DNA of 64,000 bases, taken from Entomortierella parvispora E1425. Lineage: Eukaryota > Fungi > Mortierellomycota. The position numbers and the translations under genes are program-made. Under the pieces are notes generated by a model that saw only the letters and a list, made by a program, of their open reading frames with translations, was not told the DNA's origin and searched no databases. The stretch lies in NCBI GenBank assembly GCA_020891255.1, contig BQFW01000014.1:992001-1056000 (forward strand), written 5' to 3'. Within the stretch, counting starts at the first letter, position 1. Every line of letters begins with the position of its first letter. Of this stretch, positions 30,567-46,827 are shown piece by piece.

Positions 30567-31604
30567 GATGTGAGGAAGGAAGTGTGTAGTGTCGACGGGA
30601 GATATGGGTATGTAGTACGCAGTGACAGAACAAAAATAAAAATAAAAAAAAATAAAAAAAAAGACAGGTGCGAGATAATGCAAGGCGATATGGTACAGAA
30701 ATCAGAAGGGTATTACAACAAGGGGTAAAAGAGAGGGGAGTGTGTGCGGTGTTGGTGTGTTGGTACAAATGGAATGGAGTGGATGAATCAGTGATTCGGC
30801 TTTTCTCTGCTGGTGTTGATTCAACAAAAAAAAGCGGGCGGTTGCTGCGTTGGGTAGTGGAGAGAGAAGTGGGGCAGCAAGCAAAAGATCGAAAGAGGGG
30901 GGCGTGGTGTTAGAGAGTGATGATGACCAACATGTGGAGGCTGTGCGTTGTGTGGGAGAGAGTGGGGGCTATATTGGTCAAAGAGTGTAGGAGTGATGGA
31001 GCAGAAAAGAAGAGAAGAAAGAAAAAGAAAGAAAGACGACCACCCAAGGAACCCCCAGAGCAACACACACTGTCTCGCCCTCATTCCTTGGCTGTGTCTG
31101 TCCCTTGTTCGGACCTCTCAGGCGTGGTCGCGGTCCTTGTTCCTGATAAGATCAGTCGCCAGGACAGGGTCAATGAGGGATTTTTTTATATTTTTTTTAG
31201 TGTTCTTCGTCCGGCCTCTTTTGATTTGCTGCCCTGCTCTGAAATATACCTCATTCGCAATTGGCAATCGACCCTGGCCAGGCCCCCACAATACCACAAT
31301 ACCCCATTCCCTTGCCCTCATCCAAGGGGCGCAGGGGCTTTATTGATGTCTGTCCCACCGTTGAGAACACAAAGCAATGAAGATCCAAAGAGACCAGAGC
31401 ATGGCAGAAAAACGTGGTGAACTGACTCGTGCGCAAACATTTCGCGTACTATCGTGCAGAGAAGATTTGCACACACTTGGATCAAAAGTCTTGCAGGACC
31501 CAAAAATGAATCGCTTTCGCCTCCGAGTTCCTGCCCCTAACTCCTACGAACTTTCATCACATCAAAGACAAAGACGGGACAAAACAAAAAGAAGCAAAAA
31601 GAAG

Positions 31605-31677
31605 AGGTCTCGCCGAGACTCGAACTCGGATTGCAAGATTCAGAGTCTTGATTGCTAACCAATTACAACACGAAACC
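31605..31677 (-). tRNA. tRNA-Gln (anticodon CTG), intronless
   Basis: Reverse complement GGTTTCG...CAAGA-CTCTGAA-TCTTG...GTTCGAGT...CGAGACC-T folds as a cloverleaf and is followed by a TTTTT Pol III terminator. Confidence 0.97.
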
Positions 31678-38185: not shown

Positions 38186-38375
38186 AAGTTGCCTTGCCAC
38201 TTTTTTCCAAAACAATAAAAAAATCCCTTCTTCCCCTCTCCAATTAAAGTGAAGAGCAAAAAGAAAATATTGCAATTGGCGGCGGATACCAAGGTCAAGA
38301 GCCTTCATCAGAGAGCTCACGCGCGGTGTCCCTGGTGTCCGGCTTGGCTCCCAGGTTAAAAAAGACAAAAAGAAG

Positions 38376-38448
38376 AGGTCTCGCCGAGACTCGAACTCGG
38401 ATTGCAAGATTCAGAGTCTTGATTGCTAACCAATTACAACACGAAACC
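38376..38448 (-). tRNA. tRNA-Gln (anticodon CTG), identical to the copy at 31605-31677
   Basis: Same 73-nt sequence and the same CTTCTTTTT trailer. Confidence 0.97.
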
Positions 38449-39384
38449 TTTCAGAAGCGACTGATGCGGACTTCATGTTCAACTCCGTACAAATACCCGC
38501 TCCTCTTGGGCTCAAGATGCTCGTTATCCATGCGATAATTCATTATTATATCACGTGATCAACACGGAGCTGCAGGGTGTACTTATTTGCCCAGGATAAT
38601 CTACAGTCACTGTTTTGAATATATTGAACACCTGTGAATCATTTCACAGCGTTGAGTGAATGCATCCTTTGTTGCACCCCGTTTGGTTTATCTGAGTGAA
38701 GGGGGGCCCCTTGTCAATATCCAGCTGGGAGCAACCCTCATACACGATACCGGTGGCGCTGGCGCAGCGTATGTCTGCTGTGTTTTCTGTCTGGCCAACA
38801 TGCCCTCAAAGAAAACGATACCTGGTTGTGGAAACGGGCCAGCGGGGTGTGGTCCACTTTTACTGATGACTACGCGGATATCAACATCCATCAACATCCA
38901 TCATCGTACCCCACCTTGGTTATTATTTTGCCTCTTTTTTTCCCTTTCTCATTCCTACTCTCTCCTCGACGTGCACTCTTGATACACCCTTCCAACGCAT
39001 CCCCATCCCCATCCGCAACTATCCACGCTCCTTCTCCCAAGACTCTCCCCTCACGTATCTCCCTACCTACCTGCTATTCATCAAAGATATTGTCTTGACG
39101 TCGTGCAAAGGTAGGCTTTACTCGCGCTGTTTGCCTGCTTTAATCCGGTGTAAGGGAGCAATACACTCACACGGTTTCTGTAATAGCACCTCTCTGCCAT
39201 CTCTCTGCCTCCCCTCGGCCCTTTGAAAAAGTCTACTACAAGCTACCGCCCTCGTTTGCTGCCAACACCAGGTACTGTGAAGCAAGTGCGAATGAGTAGC
39301 CCCTTGACGTTGTTCATATCAAGGGTGCAAGAATCTGATCAGAAAGGCTTTTTTTTTTTTTTACCACAGCGTCGCTCTTCTAAA

Positions 39385-40294
39385 ATGGGTGGCCCTGGCC
39401 TTTTGGCGGTCGTTGGTACAGCAAAGGAGCTCCCCAAAGTCGATCTGCCAGACTGCAAGATCCTCGTCGATGTCGGTTCGTTTTACCCATTTCTCGTTCG
39501 CTCGGTCTACAACAGCAAGATGGGCAAGCCAGAAGAATTCGCCGCCATTTGGATCCTGAACAAGTTCAATGCTCTCAATGTCGAGTTCTTTATCGACGGC
39601 CATGGCAACAAAGAGAAGCATGCAACAAGCATGGCGCGACGTGACAACCAGGCCGATCTAGACAGTGCGGAATCCATTGTTAAAGAGATGGAGGATAGAG
39701 CTGCCGTCGGAAAGAGTACCAACAAGACCGACTACAGGACCTGCACAAAGCTATTAAGGTCTTGCACATCCCTCACCTACGACTTTAAGGACAAGCTTAG
39801 CAAGCAGATGGCATCACAATTGGCGGATCGTTTCATGAATGACTATCAGCTTGGACGGACTTTTGAACAATCTCCGCGCCATGTGCAGGCGAGACGACGC
39901 ATCAGACATGAGGTTATCGTTGGTTTCGAAACTCTGAACGATCACCAGCTGAAGCAGCATTTCGATACCGCCGCCCAGAAGTACGTCAAGCTGGTCGACG
40001 GTGAGGCCGACCTCGCAATTGTTCGTCGAGCCAAGGAGCTGGTTATCGCAAAGACAAAGTTTGTTGTAGTCGGCAACGACTGTGACTATGCCATCCATCC
40101 GTCGATTCCGATCCTTCTGCGGCCTTCTGGCAAGAAGTATATCCAGTACAATGTTGATGAGCTCTTGGCAAAGTCGGAGCGGACACGGGCTCAGTTCACA
40201 GTTCTGGGCTGTGTGTCCAAAACGGACTATAACGCGAACCTTGCTGGGTTTGGCATTGTCACCAATTCGCGTATCATCAAGTCTTGCTCAAAAG
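39385..40294 (+). CDS. Exon encoding a FEN1/XPG-family PIN + H3TH nuclease domain (N-terminus of the fusion)
   Basis: ILVDVGS (D 39469), FFIDGHGNKEKHATSMARR (D 39595), DGEADLAI (E 40003, D 40009), VVGNDCDY (D 40078, D 40084) and LGCVSKTDYNANLAGFGIVT (D 40225, H3TH-like). Confidence 0.8.
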
Positions 40295-43029
40295 GTAAGT
40301 AGCCAAGGCCATTTTTTGTTCTACCAAACATCAAGCTAGAGTTCACATCAAGCAAAATAACTAATCACGCTCCGTGCAACCTTCTGTTAGACATCATTGT
40401 GGACGGCATTCCTGTGAAGGACGCTGCGCTCAAGATCTTGGACAATTACTACGAACACAAGGATGTCAAGGAGGCCATTGAAAAAATCGATCCCTCGGAT
40501 GTCGAGATGAAGGAAAACCAACGAGCGTCTTCCAAGAGGATATTCATCGATGGCGTAGAGACTCCACTCAGTGACGACGTAAAGCTCACAAGAGCAAACT
40601 TGGAGAATCAGACTCGAGATAAAGTCATCGACCTGAAGAAGCGCATGCTTGCGGCCGGCAAGGTTCGCCGCCAGGTACTCAAAAGCCGAAAGGAAAAGTC
40701 GACACAGCAGTAAGTCATCATGTCAGAACAAATACAGACAGAGCCACGATTGAAAGCTTCATCTTGCTGACACTTCTTTTTACATTGACACCTTTGATCG
40801 CAAATAGAACAAGCGTAGAAAAGTACAAGAGAAAGAGGTACAACCGCTTCAAGACTGTTCAGTGCCCGCGCCTCGATGACCCGTCACACCCAGGCTATTC
40901 TGCCAGGCCGGATGACAGTGCGACACCCGATCCAGCACGTCAAGAGCGTCAAGCACGTCAACATCTCCATCGCCAAAGTGTCAACGCACGCCGATTGACA
41001 CGTGATGACAACATGGCCATTCGTGCTGGGCGCTGCAAGGCCGAGTACAAGAGCAAAGGATTTCACAAGATGCCTTCCAAACAGTTTGCCATCAAAGTTC
41101 ACTGTGTCGGAGGCGCAGGCACGCAGGTCAATGCGACCTTGGGGGATCCGCCAAAGGATCTGGAATTCAAGCCATTCAAGCCATTCGATCCAGACTATGG
41201 CAAAAAAAACAAAGACCCCGAGAACCCCGAGGCAAGGACCAAGCCCGAGACCAAGCCCAAGCAGAGCCAAAAGAAGACGACAAGAAAGTCTGGGCAGACT
41301 CCAAAGACTCCAAAGGCACCCAAGCCGGCCACTCCACCCAGCAACCGCGCCTTGAGAAAATCGTTCTTTCTCAAAAGTCTGACTGGTCGTCACGCATGCA
41401 AAACACTGAATACGGGCCAGCTGGGAAGCAATATTGACAAGGCGATCAGCGCATCGTGGTTGGCTGAACACTCAAACAAAACAAAGTACAACACCTTAAG
41501 GAAGTTGACCCAAAACGACGTCAGACTGGCAGTTGTCAAGACCATGCGGCGCATTGCACGGGTCGCCAACGAGCTGTTGCGCCATGGGCAGGATGCCGTT
41601 GGGTTGTACATCACCGACACCAAGGATTTGCGGCCCTTGAAGGAAGCTTTGTTTCTGCCAAAGAAATTGAGGGACGCCGCTGAAGCTGCCAAAGCCGCGG
41701 CCAGTATTGCTCGCACTGCTGCCGAAGCTGATCCTACCAACACTGATGTCGCCACTGCTTTGGCAGCCGCCGACGCCGCCGCCGCCACTGCGATTGCCAA
41801 TGCCGACGTCGATAGCATTATCAACAATGCAGGCAAGAAGAGGCTGGCGAATATCGAAAAGAAAAAGGGCTCGCGTCGTCGCAGGGGCAGCAAGACGAAA
41901 AGTGCTGACACTCCCGGGTCCGGTCCAACCGGTATGGACGTTGACGCACTTGCTGTTGGTCTTTCCGATATGGATATTGACACGTCTAGCCTTGGCCCCA
42001 TGGACATGGACATTGACTCGCCTGCTCCCGCTCCTGTCTCGAGTCCCAAGGAGGACATGGACTCTGATGATGAAGTCAACGTGGATGATGAGGAGGAGGA
42101 ACTCGAGGAGGACGACGATGCACCTGACGAAGACAACACTGGGGACGGTGACGACGACGAGGGAGACATTGAGGATGAATCGGGAATGAAGGGGGACAAT
42201 GGTGGCTTCATGGTGTCTCTGCTCAGGTATTTTCGACACCAATTTGAAATTGGTCAGGGAAACACCAACCGCCACCTCATTGAAGATATTCGCTCGTTAT
42301 ACTCCAAAGTTAATACCAACTTTGACGAGTCCACGCTCCTCGTCTTGACTGGGATTCAGGCTAAAGGGTCGAGAAATGTGTACCTGGAAGGCGGTATTGT
42401 GGCTCAACTGGGCATCCGTTTAGCATGTCAGTTGCGGAGGTATTTTATTGATCAGGCGGCCGGCATTGCGACGAGTCTTCCTCAGTCCCCCATAAGGAAC
42501 GGCTACATCAGGCTAAGCGAGCTGGACCTTTGGAACCATTTCCAGTATGTTTGGGATATATTCAACTTTATCATGGTTATACGGAACGCCGAAAAAGACC
42601 CTCCAAGGCCTTCCTGCATCCACCCAACAGAACTTCAAGCTAGAACTCAACGAATTACCTCCCGGCTGGCTCCTCACAAAGCTGGTGACACCCCTCGGCA
42701 AGGGGAGACAAAGACAAGGTCACCACTGCCACGATCCAAGAGATGTCTGATCTGAGAGCATACCTGGTAAATGATGCCTCGGACAAGAGTGTTAGCTCGA
42801 GCGAGTTCTTGATGGCACAGCGGAGGATACCAGATGCTACCAACCTGGTGCGCGGACAACCAAAAAACTTTTTGCCGTCGTATCTACACAGAGGATCGAT
42901 CGTCACCAATGGGTCCCACGCCTACCTCTCAACTGTTGATCTCCGGATTCGGAAGCAACAACGATTTATCACAGAGATATTCGAGGAGGGAGGGTTCCGC
43001 AGGAGACATGTCCTCTCCCCCTGATAATC

Positions 43030-44241
43030 GAAAGTTGCTACCAAACTTGTCAACAGCCGTCCCTAGCCAGGAATCACTGACGGCAATGTTTCCAGACACA
43101 ACCAGGGTGGACATTGGCGCGATTGACCTTGGCAAGGAGTTTATGGTCGGATTTGCCTGCAAGCGCTATGACAGTGACGACTTTATCTATACGATCAGTG
43201 CAAAGACAAGGGCAGTGTACCAACCGTCCAATCGACGTCGGAGCGAAGTCAACAGATTGAAGAACAACACCATCATTGACATCCCGGTTGGAGAGAGCGC
43301 CAAGTTGATCCCACCACGCAAGTTCACTCCAGGAATGACCACGACTGGTCAGGCCATAGCAATGTATGAAACAAGGCTAGAGTCGATGGACAACAACCCA
43401 AAGGGACGGATCCAGGAAAAGTTGACCCCAGAGTACCATTTACTCTCTTCGTTCTACAACAAAGGCCATCGACATCAAAAGAGTGAGGCACAAACGAAGC
43501 GTGCGACAACGGCAGAGCTAGACATTCTGACCAACCATATCTTAACAGCCATGGGGACACATCTGCGCGTGCAAGAGGATGGTCAGCCCAGACCGAGGGG
43601 AGTAATTTCCATCGGGCAGGACGGGAAGCGTGGGTTCTCGTCGGTGTCAAAGGGCTACGAGATGTCCAAGCACAACACGTTTCTGGACCACTTTGTGCCA
43701 CGGGTAATTTTTTTTCTTTCACCTCTTTTTTTTTTTTTTTTTTTTTTTTCGGATCTGTCAAGGTCCAGTCAACAAGAACAAGAGACTAACAGTTGTTCCA
43801 CGATTCATGTCTACAACCATTGCAACTAGGCCCGAAGACTTGGCTACATCATTGTTGGTTTGCCAGAGTATTATACCTCCCGCCGTTGCCCAAAGTGTCA
43901 GAGCAGCGGCATCTCCGAGCAGGACTTTGTGGGCTATATAGGAATACGCCGTGCCCATTGTGTCCGCTGTGGGACATGGTTCCACCGGGATCTTCTTGCT
44001 GCTTCCAACATGGTCGTAGCGACCAGGTACTACCTGGACCACCTCTCGCGCCCTGCCTACCTTTTGCCAATCACAAAGGACGAGAAATTTGTCTTTGACC
44101 AAAGGTATGGACCCAACCTTCCACCGGGTGTGCCAGCCAACAAAATCATTCGCCGTGGTGAATCTGGTGATCAGCCAGACATTGCCAGTTCGAGCAGTTC
44201 AAGCGCACCACCACCTCCTCCACCACCAGCGTCGCCGCCAG
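43030..44241 (+). CDS. TnpB/Fanzor-type RuvC nuclease domain with zinc finger (two exons)
   Basis: RuvC-I IGAIDLG (D 43125). After the phase-0 intron 43704-43829: ARRLGYIIVGLPEYYTSRRCPKC (E 43866), HCVRC, and WFHRDLLAASNM (D 43989). Confidence 0.88.
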
Positions 44242-45420
44242 GTAAGGCAACTCTGCTGCTCGTGCTTTTATAGGTTATAGACCATGTGCTGCTGAATGTC
44301 CTCTTGACGTCCTCTTGACCACATTTCACATTGTATTTTCTCAGGCACTCCGCAGACACCAAAGTTGAGCCGAAAGGACGCCCAAAAGCAGAGGCAAGCA
44401 CAGACTCTAGCCCAGCTTGGCTCAGGGTCAGCTGCAGGGTCAAGTTCTACGCAAGTGCAGGCAGAAGGCCCTCCACCAAAGAAGCGACGCACTCGTCCTG
44501 CTGCAAAGAGGACGGCACCGCAGACGCCGGCACAGATACCGCAAGGATCATGGACAAGTTCAGCTCTGGGTTCGCAAACGCACAGTCAGGCTCAGGCCCA
44601 GACACAGGCCCAGGCGTCATGGACACCAGAGCAAAGGTCGTTTCTTTCACCCACTCAGTCATCACAAAGACAAAGCTATGCTGCCATTGCAGCAGTGGGA
44701 GTGGCACAGGCACAGGCACGGCAAGGACCAGCATCAGCGTCAAGTTCGCAAGCTCGTTCACGGATGCAACCCCAAACACGACAGCAGACACAGAGTCAGC
44801 CGCAGAGTCAGCCACAGACCGGGGCACAGAGACCACCCATGCGGTTGTGGTCCTACGCAGAGTCAGTGCGAGGAAGGCAAGCCGAAGCAGGATCATCCAC
44901 AGGAGGTGAGTGAATCGCCCAATTGCTCCACAATTATATCCATTCGTTATCTAACACAGGCGCCGACCATTTCTTTGACTGTCCATCGCAACAGGTCCCA
45001 TTCGCCGTGGCCAGTCCATTCACCCGCAAGCAGGGCAGCAAACAGGCAAGTCCATGGGAGCGTTCAAAAAGCGAGACCACTTTCTAACATGGATGTATAT
45101 TCATCCTTTCTTGTAGGCTTGGCCTTCTCGGCATCGCCCTCTACCCCATCGCCGGCCGCTACATCAGCCTCAGCCTCAGCGTCATCTTCTTCTGCACCCA
45201 GGCGACAGCAGCAGCAGCAGCAAGGTAGATGCAGCAACCTCCTCGAGTCATCCAACGCACTTGATACTCACTGTCACCATGGTTGACCACTTTTCGCAAT
45301 CATCACAATAGATCCAACAGCAGGATCAGCATCTTCATCCCTCAGCGATACTAACAAACTCGCGTAATCTACCTTATAGTAGAACTGGGTAAGAAAAAGT
45401 TCTTGTTCAAAAGGCAAAGG

Positions 45421-45452
45421 CAAGCGACATGCTACAAGCGACATGCTTCAAG
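45421..45452. repeat. Tandem repeat CAAGCGACATGCT x2 (14-nt period) plus a partial third unit
   Basis: Units at 45421-45433 and 45435-45447, then CAAG at 45449. Lies inside the predicted last intron of the Fanzor-like gene. Confidence 0.85.
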
Positions 45453-45744
45453 TCTTTCTAACACGTTGATCACCTCTCTTTTCGTCTCTACAGGTTTTGC
45501 TCCGGGTAGGTCACTATTTTTTTTTTTTTTTTTGCAAAGGTCGCATGTGAAATTGTGATTTTTGTGAATCGTCGTGAAAACTAATCTAAGCCACCCTTGA
45601 CCAATAGCGAAGCCCGCAGCTGCAGACTGCACACTCTCTGGTTGCGCCCCCGGATAGATAGTCCCTGCCTGCCATAAAGCCTCCCTTGGAATCTTGCAGG
45701 ACCGATAGCTCCTTTTTACATCACGAATACAAGCACGACCCATT

Positions 45745-46827
45745 ATGACCGCCGAAAGCATCTACTCCATTCCATCCAAGGATCAAAGAGCGGAATGGGC
45801 AGAGTAAATGTCCACCATGCAAAACTGAGGTTGTGTTCTCTGCTCTCTCTAACGCGTCTTGTAATCTTATATGACTGTGTAGAGAGCAATCAGTCCTCAA
45901 AACAAACTTGGTTGTTGAGGACGACCATCCAGACTGGTGGCTCTCGCTGGTCAAACCTGAAGACGAAGAGAACAATCCCTTTGAGCTACAGTCAACCCAG
46001 GGGCTGAAATACGTCGGAGGCGTGGATCTCAGCTTTATTGTCGGTAACAATGAAGATGCAATCGCATCTTTGATCATCCTGTCATACCCAAAACTCGAGG
46101 TGAGTATGAGGAAGATAAAAGGCACAAATGGGCAGACTTTTTTTTTTCCAGAATACAAGTACTCTTGAATGTTGTTCTGATATTCTTTCCAATGGCGTCT
46201 TCTTATCCGTTTCTTCCTTAGGTCGTGTATGAGAACCACGCAAAGGTCAAATTGACCCTTCCTTACATCGCGGGATACCTAGCTTTTCGAGAAGTTCAGC
46301 CCCTAATGTCGCTCATCAACACCCTGCGAGACACGCGCCCTGAGCTCGTACCGCAAGTGATCTTGGTCGATGGCTGTGGTATTTTGCACCCACGCGGGTT
46401 CGGACTTGCCAGCCACCTTGGTCTTTTATCCAATATCCCAACCATTGGATGTTCAAAAAACTTCCTTGTCATTGACAATGAGGGTCCAGTGTTGGGTGCT
46501 CAACCAACGGAGCTCAAGAACATCTTCAAAAGCTATGTGGCCAAGCATGCAGAAGAGAAAGGATTGATGTTGCTCAAAGGCGAGGTCTCGGGCAAGGTCT
46601 ATGGTGCGGCTCTGTCTGCTGCGACAAAACGATCTCCAGCAGGTCCTCAAAACCCGATTTTTGTGTCCATTGGACACAAGGTCTCATTGGCGACAGCGGT
46701 GGCCCTGGTGCGGGCATGTTCTTTGTACAGAGTCCCGGAACCCATCCGACAAGCAGATCAAAAGAGTCGGACAGAGATTCGCAAGTGGTGTGAACAACAG
46801 GAGAGGGAGAAGCAGAAGCAGGAGTAA
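45745..46827 (+). CDS. ENDOV: Endonuclease V (inosine-specific nuclease), 3 exons
   Basis: ATG 45745. Spliced WAEEQSVLKTNLVVEDD, GGVDLSF, PYIAGYLAFREV, ILVDGCGILHPRGFGLASHLG, IPTIGCSKN, PIFVSIGH, YRVPEPIRQAD. Confidence 0.95.

Follow-up and report, generated by a model that had tools for sequence, protein, structure and literature searches.

The window, which is the whole stretch analysed here, comprises 64,000 nucleotides of contig BQFW01000014.1 from the fungus Entomortierella parvispora E1425. Within it, positions 38575–45615 are a non-autonomous DNA transposon of this species, and its gene encodes a fusion of two predicted nucleases (Table 1). The gene has eight exons and encodes one polypeptide of 1765 amino acids in the intact sister copy L001, a second copy of the element elsewhere in the Entomortierella parvispora genome. 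Spliced, L001 yields this protein (P0141) without interruption. The order along the chain is a FEN1/EXO1/XPG domain, a long basic and then acidic linker, a Fanzor nuclease and a low-complexity tail.

Table 1 Features of the element and of the fusion gene (positions in the window)
Feature	Position	Strand	Remarks
Left 9-bp target-site duplication	38566..38574	.	GGAGCTGCA; 8/9 positions match the right one, GCAGCTGCA
Mobile element	38575..45615	+	7.04 kb; starts GGGTGTACTTATTTGCCC, ends CCAATAGCGAAGCCC; fusion gene is its only gene
Exon 1	39385..40294	+	FEN1/XPG-superfamily nuclease domain (predicted): N region, helical insert, I region, H3TH-like motif
Catalytic codon D29	39469-71	+	exon 1
Catalytic codon D71	39595-97	+	exon 1
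Catalytic codon K78	39616-18	+	exon 1
Catalytic codon R85	39637-39	+	exon 1
Catalytic codon E207	40003-05	+	exon 1
Catalytic codon D209	40009-11	+	exon 1
Catalytic codon D232	40078-80	+	exon 1
Catalytic codon D234	40084-86	+	exon 1
Catalytic codon D281	40225-27	+	exon 1
Intron 1	40295..40390	+	96 nt, GT-AG (GTAAGT...TGTTAG), phase 1; skipped in X2 contig
Exon 2	40391..40709	+	helices that extend the nuclease domain and pack on it (model)
Intron 2	40710..40807	+	98 nt, GT-AG (GTAAGT...AAATAG), phase 2; skipped in X2 contig
Exon 3	40808..43703	+	linker; from about 42159, Fanzor N-terminal half with RuvC-I
First +1 frame break	42592	+	extra A in A-run; absent from L001, X1 and X2 contigs
Second +1 frame break	42702	+	extra G in G-run; absent from L001 and contigs
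Third +1 frame break	43017	+	extra C in C-run; absent from L001 and contigs; original frame regained
RuvC-I Asp codon (GAIDLG)	43125..43127	+	nearly invariant column in alignment A2; D1183 of P0141
Intron 3	43704..43829	+	126 nt, GT-AG; X2 joint and splice sites
Exon 4	43830..44241	+	relocated RuvC-II Glu, C4 zinc ribbon, RuvC-III HRD
Relocated RuvC-II Glu (PEYYTS)	43866-68	+	exon 4
C4 zinc ribbon Cys codons	43887, 43896, 43959, 43968	+	exon 4
RuvC-III HRD Asp	43989-91	+	exon 4
Intron after exon 4	44242..44344	+	GT/GC-AG joint downstream of introns 1-2
Exons 5-8	44345..45367	+	Ser/Gln/Ala/Pro-rich C-terminal tail
Intron in tail	44906..44994	+	X2 joint
Intron in tail	45046..45116	+	GC-AG; X2 joint
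Last intron in tail	45225..45311	+	public gene model only
Right-terminal ~320 nt	45294..45615	+	nearly invariant between the two copies; expected place of a Fanzor guide RNA scaffold
Conserved 20-nt motif and hairpin	45345..45383	+	GCGATACTAACAAACTCGCG; candidate guide-RNA or regulatory element
Stop codon TAA	45365..45367	+	CDS end
Right 9-bp target-site duplication	45616..45624	.	GCAGCTGCA

Exon 1 is 910 nt long and intron 1 is therefore in phase 1. The long middle open reading frame that follows (40764–42755, 663 aa) is joined to exon 1 in frame by a spliced, cDNA-like contig of run X2. This single 727-nt contig maps to 40165–40292, 40389–40709 and 40808–41058, and exactly omits introns 1 and 2. 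Other contigs cover the remainder of the gene, two short gaps excepted, and no splice joint is present in the X2 contig across 41838–43704. Run X2 carries the tool label 'DNA?' and is read here as cDNA because of six GT/GC-AG joints which are absent from X1 of the same sample. As about 2–3% of positions differ between the X2 contigs and the window, the contigs derive from one or more sister copies and not demonstrably from this locus. They show transcription and the predicted splicing for at least one copy of the family. Splicing of L001 at the sites in Table 1, including 45225–45311, reproduces P0141 exactly. The linker encoded by exon 3 has basic, Pro/Lys-rich and acidic stretches with family-conserved blocks, and the middle part of this exon is conserved in P0005, P0006 and P0008.

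An earlier note, made from the letters of this stretch, had proposed introns 1 and 2 in these positions and phases; their canonical sites and the X2 contig which skips both confirm them. The gene end was placed at 45509 in that note and has to be moved, since the coding sequence stops at the TAA. Its estimate of roughly 1,700–1,800 aa agrees with the sister copy and with the public model of the window copy (1701 aa), but the window copy is frame-broken as assembled. Three observations go beyond the earlier note: a transposon with 9-bp duplications carries the gene as its cargo, the reading frame is broken in this copy, and the architecture belongs to a multi-copy family.

Judged by profiles and modelling, exon 1 is a true FEN1/XPG-superfamily 5′ nuclease domain with a complete predicted set of active-site residues. 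The nine conserved catalytic positions are kept in 61–65 of the 66 family members. A profile of these 66 members matched Rad2, EXO1, FEN1, XPG and GEN1 chains of the PDB at nearly full length (E=1.4e-15 to 1e-12), and the motifs matched in the alignment include vD, DG..EK..R, EAD, DSD and NDY..LG. Pfam XPG_I is present in 41/66 members. The AF2 model of the N-terminal domain has a pLDDT of 92 and a pTM of 0.90; residues 304–410, encoded by exon 2, exceed a pLDDT of 89 and form helices continuous with the nuclease domain. At E<=0.001, the best 49 PDB matches of this model belong to FEN1, EXO1, Rad2 or the related XRN2, and the top 30 among the Swiss-Prot models are all FEN1.

The domain shares with FEN1, EXO1, Rad2(XPG) and GEN1 the fold, the N and I regions, the aligned acidic residues, an H3TH-like motif and a conserved Lys and Arg, 7 and 14 residues past D71. 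However, it is only 12–16% identical to any solved member and has its N region separated from the I region by a helical insert of ~110 aa. A PCNA-binding tail was not identified in the fusion-family domain. Furthermore, the known enzymes are housekeeping repair proteins, whereas the fusion-family domain is transposon-borne and fused to a second nuclease.

For the C-terminal part, sequence comparisons support a Fanzor (eukaryotic TnpB) nuclease with predicted activity. The RuvC/zinc-ribbon part matches Pfam Cas12f1-like_TNB (E=6e-9, exceeding its cut-off), and the profile search against the PDB found mimivirus Fanzor2 (9b0l), TnpB, Cas12f, GtFz1 and SpuFz1. The sequence satisfies the Bao–Jurka Fanzor motif, with a D-to-TS distance of 208. 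In alignment A2, a Gly occupies the canonical RuvC-II position and the Glu lies in N/PEY[YF]TS; a Gly at this site and a relocated Glu are described for Fanzors in PMC10530073.

The characterised Fanzors SpuFz1, GtFz1, ApmFz2 and MmeFz2, as presented in PMC10432273 and PMC10530073, share with the fusion family the RuvC-I Asp, the RuvC-II Gly and relocated Glu, the zinc ribbon and the RuvC-III Asp. Introns in the gene, basic NLS-like N-terminal regions and transposon residence are also common to both. In contrast, each of these four has a single nuclease active site, and in term searches of the two papers their N-termini came up only as disordered or NLS (PMC10432273, PMC10530073). The fusion family gains an N-terminal nuclease domain of ~410 aa and a linker of ~450 aa, for a total of 1150–1800 aa, and its similarity to solved Fanzors is limited to the C-terminal 60–90 residues.

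By sequence comparison, the fusion architecture is a multi-copy family and not a one-off. Both domains are found in about 20 of the 140 cluster representatives. All named matches to either domain belong to Mortierellaceae (Entomortierella, Dissophora, Actinomortierella, Mortierella, Linnemannia and Haplosporangium, together with Modicella, Benniella, Lunasporangiospora, Podila and Gryganskiella). The tblastn hits L002 and L003 have the same domain order; in L003 an intron lies at the point matching the end of exon 1, and the fusion is kept among proteins only 20–40% identical. The FEN1/XPG–Fanzor architecture was not found in the literature searched. The survey of Mortierellaceae suggested in the earlier note recovered the two-domain order in at least nine genera. 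Its calls have stood up as well: the FEN1/XPG assignment through the profile, XPG_I and AF2 matches, the Fanzor/TnpB RuvC and zinc-finger assignment through the Pfam hit, the published motif and the solved chains, and the single spliced fusion gene through the cDNA-like contig, the sister copy and the shared order in Mortierellaceae proteins and loci.

The window copy switches frame three times within 42545–43025, in the Fanzor N-terminal half, and each switch is one extra base relative to the sister copy and the cDNA contigs. Downstream of the second break, frame 2 holds the family-conserved LPSYLxRGxIVTNG block, and at the third the window reads HVLSP|PDNRK against HVLAPDPHR in P0006. Because of the three extra bases, the spliced window copy read straight meets stops at codons 1059, 1064 and 1078, and the full protein is not encodable as assembled. 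The public gene model masks the breaks by an intron which the cDNA contigs do not have. As homopolymer insertions break the frame, the window copy is either decayed or dead, or mis-assembled.

The chances are about even that the gene is a dead relic, with real frameshifts and nothing at 39385–45509 working today. The insertions stand against L001, the cDNA contigs and the X1 DNA contigs alike, the straight reading meets the stops just described, and the intron required by the public model is not seen in the unspliced contig over 41838–43704. However, each of the three alters the length of a homopolymer run by a single base, and the non-coding parts of the element hold five more of this kind, a pattern also typical of residual repeat assembly error. 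Outside the three sites there is no stop, and only 12 amino acids differ. In addition, Logan contigs drop rare variants, and the lack of the window version among them is therefore no proof of its absence.

The element is delimited by blastn, which aligns window 38574–45615 with L001 5203–12204 at 97.7% identity; similarity ends sharply on both sides, and L001 is flanked on each by a perfect AAAATGTAA duplication. With regard to selection, 23 of the codons that differ between these copies do so synonymously and 12 non-synonymously. No transposase was found within the window. Since no terminal inverted repeat was detected past GGG/CCC at the element ends, the 9-bp duplication is the sole basis for assignment to the Mutator superfamily. 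According to Bao & Jurka (2013, PMC3627910), Mucoromycota Fanzor1 elements are transposase-free, have 9-bp duplications and are assigned to MuDr. Three of these MuDr Fanzor1 elements, ROr-4, PBl-3 as well as MCi-4, share with the present element a Mucoromycota host, a Fanzor without transposase, the 9-bp duplications and the C-terminal D...[TS][TS]xxC4...RD motif. Compared by paper text only, they differ in that a term search of that text brought up no FEN/XPG domain ('xpg', 0 occurrences); the paper terms their N-terminal halves 'highly variable'. The E. parvispora element in turn differs from MuDr Fanzor1 elements in that a MuDR-like inverted repeat was not detected.

The right end is strongly conserved, with two differences in 322 nt (45294–45615), whereas the internal non-coding stretch 38745–39360 has diverged by about 4%. 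GCGATACTAACAAACTCGCG is identical or has 2 mismatches in L003, L002 and L015, where the proteins are 31–60% identical over aligned pieces. The 5-bp hairpin 3′ of it (45368–72 pairing with 45379–83) includes two compensatory pairs and is followed by a GGTAAG donor-like site at 45389. Folding of the right-terminal 256 nt was no better than shuffles (z=0.81) and the region had no Rfam match, so that neither approach found a guide RNA.

The best explanation overall, to which we assign a probability of about 0.6, is a transposon-borne FEN–Fanzor fusion which would combine an RNA-guided cut with 5′ end processing favouring homologous recombination. By analogy with other transposon-borne TnpB/Fanzor nucleases, the Fanzor part may be guided by an RNA that the element encodes close to its right end. 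Excision of the element would be the work of a Mutator-type transposase provided in trans, and the Fanzor with its guide RNA would cut the site left empty. The tethered FEN/EXO1-like domain would then act on the break by 5′-to-3′ resection, or by removal of a 5′ flap or displaced strand. According to a review, OMEGA nucleases cut the excised site, which leads to gene conversion, and homing in eukaryotes is harder through reliance on end joining (PMC13565253). Resection for homing would be only one of several roles fitting a FEN-type domain.

It is possible, if rather unlikely, that the domain aids the RNA-guided cut by trimming the non-target strand or an R-loop 5′ flap, or matures the 5′ end of the guide RNA, and does not act in repair. 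FEN-superfamily enzymes cleave 5′ flaps and bubbles, the domain is covalently tethered to and co-conserved with the RuvC part, and the K78/R85 pair and the following helical region are kept in the family. R-loop trimming might assist one RuvC site in finishing a double-strand break. However, characterised Fanzors and TnpBs cleave both strands by RuvC alone (PMC10530073, PMC10432273), the linker of ~450 residues makes precise R-loop positioning less obvious, and no RNA substrate was identified. We find it more doubtful still that the domain serves transposition, at flaps or gaps of Mutator-type insertion or excision intermediates, or is a general DNA-repair accessory. Accessory nucleases and helicases are known in transposons (discussion in PMC3627910) and the 9-bp duplications need gap repair, but an accessory need not be fused, yet the fusion and the matching L003 intron are kept at 20–40% protein identity. 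Lastly, an artefactual gene model joining a neighbouring Rad2-like nuclease to a Fanzor is highly improbable and largely refuted: many database matches to the N-terminal domain have only 250–450 aa, but those with a recorded source are mostly ORF calls on short metagenome/Logan contigs or partial models, one cluster of them also contains an 801-aa fungal protein, the spliced contig connects exon 1 in frame with the middle ORF, a single 642-aa ORF in L003 starts just past the nuclease exon and extends into the Fanzor half, and the 1765-aa sister copy has no stop throughout.

Engineered Cas9/Cas12–exonuclease fusions, which raise homology-directed repair or enlarge deletions, likewise bind a programmable nuclease covalently to a 5′ end-processing nuclease. 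They are laboratory constructs, whereas the Mortierellaceae fusion is natural, encoded by a selfish element and conserved in a fungal family. In the preferred reading of an RNA-guided cut followed by 5′ end processing, the break would be channelled into homologous recombination, with the sister or homologue that bears the element as partner, instead of end joining, and the element would therefore be restored or copied.

Exon 1 of the window copy, searched alone, gave no Pfam match even at E<=10, so its domain could be recognised only through a family profile. Word-indexed protein searches, in which the 8000 candidates sharing most words were scored, returned few relatives. Among 1.84 billion cluster representatives searched, 140 relatives were found, and 66 of these were aligned over the nuclease domain (alignment and profile A1). 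The consensus reads MGxxGLW ... VD ... LYxDGxxxxEKxxTxxxR ... EADxxIA ... VVSxDSDxLxY ... LGIVSxNDYxxNIxxLG. Nine residues (D29, D71, K78, R85, E207, D209, D232, D234 and D281) are each conserved in 61-65 of the 66 members, and the window copy has all nine. We take them to be the equivalents of human FEN1 D34, D86, K93, R100, E158, E160, D179, D181 and D233.

Against the PDB, the A1 profile matched 35 sequences, nearly all from the FEN superfamily, with Rad2 as the best match (4q0r, E=1.4e-15, profile positions 1-285). The catalytic cores of Rad2/XPG, EXO1, FEN1 and GEN1 are matched almost end to end, and the acidic motifs pair one to one with those of Rad2 in the profile alignment. At the level of individual members, Pfam recognises XPG_I in 41 of 66, XPG_I_2 in 14 and XPG_N in two. 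AlphaFold (AF2), run on residues 1-410 with A1 as the alignment, gave a model with pLDDT 92 and pTM 0.90; the single sequence gave an unusable one (pLDDT 31). The 49 Foldseek matches in the PDB at E<=0.001 are FEN1, EXO1, Rad2 and the related XRN2, the first three leading with E down to 3.8e-7 and TM 0.5-0.6. Among Swiss-Prot models, FEN1 accounts for all of the best 30 fold matches. Since profile matches, XPG_I in family members, the structural model and its FEN-type fold matches agree, the FEN-type assignment is correct: exon 1 encodes a domain of the FEN1/XPG (Rad2) superfamily with a complete set of predicted metal-binding carboxylates and catalytic Lys/Arg, and structure-specific 5' nuclease activity is predicted. 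The modelled domain combines a PIN-like alpha/beta fold with a helical arch region and an H3TH DNA-binding motif.

In a contig of run X3, from another sample under the same species label, 196 nt in the helical insert of the nuclease domain, at window 39789-39986, are replaced by 184 unrelated letters. This difference points to an arch/insert region that varies among subfamilies.

Fanzors are eukaryotic RNA-guided nucleases related to Cas12. In the C-terminal half of the protein, exon 4 matches Pfam PF07282 (Cas12f1-like_TNB) with 36-50 bits (cut-off 26.3). A phmmer search of the PDB with this half found no match, and a profile of 12 family members (A2) was required. Its matches are limited to the last 60-90 residues: the mimivirus Fanzor2 (9b0l) at E=7e-5, LaTranC, Cas-phi, TnpB and Cas12f at E<=0.07 and, more weakly, the Fanzor1 proteins of Guillardia (GtFz1, 9cer, E=0.027) and Spizellomyces (SpuFz1, 8gkh, E=0.12). 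The Fanzor motif of Bao and Jurka, D-X(125,275)-[TS][TS]-X-X-C4 zinc finger-X(5,50)-RD (PMC3627910), is present in P0141, the 1765-aa protein of the sister copy L001 in the same Entomortierella parvispora genome (assembly GCA_020891255.1). D1183 (in GAIDLG) lies 208 residues before TS 1391-1392, which is followed by CPKC...CVRC and HRD 1427-1429; the window sequence is identical in this stretch (YTSRRCPKC...CVRC...HRD). In A2, the canonical RuvC-II site reads I-x-I-G and a Glu occurs in N/PEY[YF]TS (PEYYTS in the window copy), immediately ahead of the zinc ribbon. The Gly and the relocated Glu are seen in three of the four full-length members, and the model of the fourth, P0117, lacks that stretch. 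According to PMC10530073, Fanzors have exchanged the canonical RuvC-II Glu for Gly or Pro and relocated the catalytic Glu; judged by alignment and not by structure, the present family shows the same rearrangement. Among protein-language-model neighbours, the nearest are clusters from eukaryotes and giant viruses that carry PF07282 and DUF8286. Both domain assignments of the earlier note are thus borne out. The PIN/XPG domain in exon 1 is supported by profile, Pfam (in family members) and AlphaFold/Foldseek, and for the RuvC plus zinc-finger module of Fanzor/TnpB type, Pfam, profile-PDB matches and the Bao-Jurka motif agree.

The two halves belong to one gene. Its first two introns bear what read as textbook fungal splice signals, and a single 727-nt contig of run X2 skips both. 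Other contigs of this run skip four further introns, one of them of GC-AG type. Although X2 is typed 'DNA?', its contigs derive from spliced RNA, since the six joints are canonical and X1, a DNA run of the same sample, has none of them. No RNA run is recorded for the gene, and run X5 gave almost nothing. Locus L001 (EMPS_11535), when spliced at the mapped sites, yields the deposited protein P0141 exactly and without a stop. About 20 of the 140 cluster representatives carry both halves, including proteins of 1166, 1191, 1310 and 1315 aa from Dissophora globulifera, E. parvispora, Actinomortierella ambigua and Mortierella sp. AD094. Furthermore, tblastn of P0141 on two loci in other assemblies recovers the same order of nuclease, linker and Fanzor, and at L003, a family locus in another assembly, one ORF of 642 aa leads from directly past the nuclease exon to within the Fanzor half. 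The single spliced fusion gene proposed in the earlier note is confirmed by these four lines of evidence, and the two introns it had placed proved right in both signals and phases.

Features of the window and of related loci (window coordinates unless a locus is named)
Feature	Coordinates	Strand	Remarks
ORFs in succession	39223-40302, 40399-40713, 40764-42755, 42834-43829, 43860-44273	+	
Intron	40295-40390	+	GTAAGT...CTAAT...TGTTAG, phase 1; 727-nt X2 contig
Intron	40710-40807	+	GTAAGT...CTGAC...AAATAG, phase 2; 727-nt X2 contig
Intron	43704-43829	+	X2 contigs
Intron	44242-44344	+	X2 contigs
Intron	44906-44994	+	X2 contigs
GC-AG intron	45046-45116	+	GCAAGT...TTGTAG, 71 nt, C-terminal tail; X2 spliced contig
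20-nt motif	45345-45364		overlaps last codons
Motif and hairpin region	45345-45393		window copy
Motif and hairpin region	L003 10479-10520		
Motif and hairpin region	L002 11568-11620		
Motif and hairpin region	L015 135-90	minus	metagenome contig
tRNA-Gln(CTG) pair	31604-31677 and 38375-38448	minus	6.7 kb apart; the second is an ordinary neighbour of the element
Endonuclease V gene	45795-46827		directly downstream of the element; intron-containing; Pfam Endonuclease_5, E=2e-45; ordinary host gene

As assembled, the window copy itself does not read through. Between 42545 and 43025 the conserved reading frame passes from 0 through 1 and 2 to 0 again, with the family-conserved blocks PPGWLLTKL in frame 1 and LPSYLHRGSIVTNG in frame 2; translated straight on, the copy runs into stops at codons 1059, 1064 and 1078. 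Introns were considered as the source of the frame changes: for a GTATGT donor at 42545 there is no acceptor that restores the right frame, and the shift from 2 to 0 permits no intron. Comparison with the sister copy replaced this explanation by single-base insertions, for the window copy has an extra A at 42592, G at 42702 and C at 43017, all in homopolymer runs. The same three bases are missing from the cDNA contig and from the X1 DNA contigs, Logan contigs in which near-identical repeats are collapsed. They are either mutations or residual assembly errors; the non-coding parts of the element show five more one-base differences in homopolymers. The public gene model of the window copy (EMPS_10280, protein P0001, 1701 aa) bridges the frameshifts by an intron at about 42.68-42.89 kb (42680-42890), which is not shown by a cDNA-like X2 contig that is unspliced from 41838 to 43704. 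Due to this intron, some 70 residues of P0001 are out of frame and part of the conserved N-terminal half of the Fanzor is missing. All other coding indels relative to L001 are multiples of three, and 23 synonymous stand against 12 non-synonymous codon differences. The resulting dN/dS, a rough estimate near 0.2, indicates that the lineages leading to both copies were under purifying selection along the whole protein.

The gene is the cargo of a transposon. By blastn, window 38574-45615 corresponds to L001 5203-12204 with 97.7% identity over 7.06 kb, and similarity drops abruptly at both ends. Between 38575-45615 and L001 5204-12204 there are 82 substitutions, 60 of them transitions (C>T 21, T>C 19, G>A 16, A>G 4). 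The element begins with GGGTGTAC and ends with GAAGCCC. L001 is flanked by a perfect 9-bp target-site duplication (AAAATGTAA on both sides), and the 9-bp flanks of the window copy, GGAGCTGCA and GCAGCTGCA, match at eight of nine positions. Terminal inverted repeats were sought by aligning the left end with the reverse-complemented right end, which scores 17 (shuffle mean 18); the ends have only GGG/CCC in common, and a repeat search over 36-48 kb found the element without inverted repeats. The fusion gene is the only one in the element, which has no transposase. In this it resembles the Mucoromycota Fanzor1 elements described in PMC3627910, which likewise have 9-bp duplications, lack a transposase and were assigned to MuDr. 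As for a Mutator/MuDR-type identity, the 9-bp duplication was found and the terminal inverted repeats were not. The left end lies 126 bp from the second of two tRNA-Gln genes. Insertion beside tRNAs as a habit of the family was rejected: no tRNA lies near L001, L002 or L003, so the family as a whole shows no target preference of this kind.

Conservation between the copies is far higher over the element's first 170 nt and last 320 nt than over its internal non-coding DNA; the last 320 nt hold two differences between the copies, as against about 4% divergence internally. A Fanzor guide (omega) RNA would be encoded at the 3' end and extend to the right end of the transposon. In this region, the fold is no better than that of shuffles, an Rfam scan matched only the flanking tRNA, and RNAalifold on three 3' regions gave a weak result. 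A 20-nt motif, GCGATACTAACAAACTCGCG, overlaps the last codons. It is identical in L003, and in the family locus L002 and the metagenome contig L015 it differs at two adjacent bases only. The proteins of the motif loci are 31-60% identical over aligned pieces, and all wobble positions of the motif are kept. Downstream of the motif lies a 5-bp hairpin, two of whose pairs are compensatory among the four sequences; in these, the hairpin is 95% paired as against 10-45% with the partners slid, and 23 of 500 shuffles do equally well. A donor-like GGTAAG comes after the hairpin at three of the four loci. Motif and hairpin may be part of a guide RNA, a 3'-UTR intron or splicing signal, a regulatory element or a protein-binding site, and are only a lead. 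A metagenome scan for the motif returned 30 loci, among which L015 is the only family member; with 18 fixed bases, chance matches are expected, and they account for the other 29.

All named relatives of either half come from Mortierellaceae. The same domain order across this family, which the earlier note had proposed to look for, is seen in Dissophora, Actinomortierella and Mortierella proteins. Matches of 250-450 aa that seem to stand alone are, where the source is recorded, for the most part partial models or ORFs called on short contigs from metagenomes or Logan, and one cluster of short nuclease matches also contains a fungal protein of 801 aa. The short matches represent exon 1, truncated at its intron. 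ORFs of about 260 aa from soil metagenomes and Logan (P0018, P0030, P0036, P0064 and others), some annotated '5'-3' exonuclease', are likewise pieces of exon 1 from this Mortierellaceae transposon family and neither bacterial nor stand-alone nucleases. Public annotation of the family is piecemeal. EMPS_10280 is a 'hypothetical protein / Cas12f1-like TNB domain-containing protein', the Actinomortierella ambigua relative was named 'Rad2 nuclease' by its annotators, and 'putative transposase' also occurs. The other E. parvispora loci examined are L001 and L006, which encodes a distant paralogue (P0104). Several runs of other strains under the same species label (X7-X12) contain none of the sampled 31-mers of the gene. 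This hints at presence/absence variation, in which other strains may lack the subfamily.

In full-text literature searches, no paper turned up in which Fanzor occurs together with XPG or with Mortierella. At the level of titles and abstracts, Fanzor with 'flap', Fanzor with 'PIN domain' and TnpB with XPG led to unrelated papers only, and term searches of the main Fanzor/TnpB literature found no such fusion described. The searched passages of Bao and Jurka (PMC3627910) contain no XPG domain and no occurrence of 'xpg'; they call the N-terminal halves 'highly variable'. PMC10530073 states that Fanzors 'often contain various domains', and its supplement lay outside the search, so an earlier mention is possible. 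What appears new is that the nuclease of a Fanzor transposon has acquired a second nuclease domain, of FEN type: in the main Fanzor literature, the characterised proteins have a single RuvC active site, whereas this family adds a FEN-type site.

What could the second nuclease do? OMEGA nucleases cut the empty site after excision and thereby provoke gene conversion, and homing is less effective in eukaryotes with their reliance on end joining (PMC13565253). The same source poses as an open question the role of Fanzors in eukaryotes, where end joining stands against the recombination needed for homing. By analogy, we infer that the Fanzor half would act like other OMEGA systems and make an RNA-guided break at the empty site left by excision. 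At this break, the tethered FEN/EXO1-like domain would then start 5' resection or remove flaps, and repair would be biased to homologous recombination over end joining. The element could copy itself back to the site or into empty alleles and depend little on end processing by the host. That the tethered nuclease biases repair in this way is a tentative proposal; for a natural 'cut-and-resect' homing device that forces homologous recombination, we put the probability at roughly 0.3. Alternatively, the FEN-type domain may aid cutting of the R-loop or non-target strand or mature the guide RNA, a role we consider unlikely. Action on transposition intermediates appears quite improbable.

If true, cut-and-resect would be a novel mechanism among OMEGA/Fanzor systems and could serve as a blueprint for editors that favour homology-directed repair, with the family as a natural model for nuclease-exonuclease genome editors. 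Throughout the family, a predicted complete FEN1/EXO1-type active site has been kept by selection in fusion with a Fanzor. Conserved across Mortierellaceae, the fusion is also expressed, present in multiple copies and recently mobile, and it suggests a route by which a selfish element may get around the repair-pathway problem.
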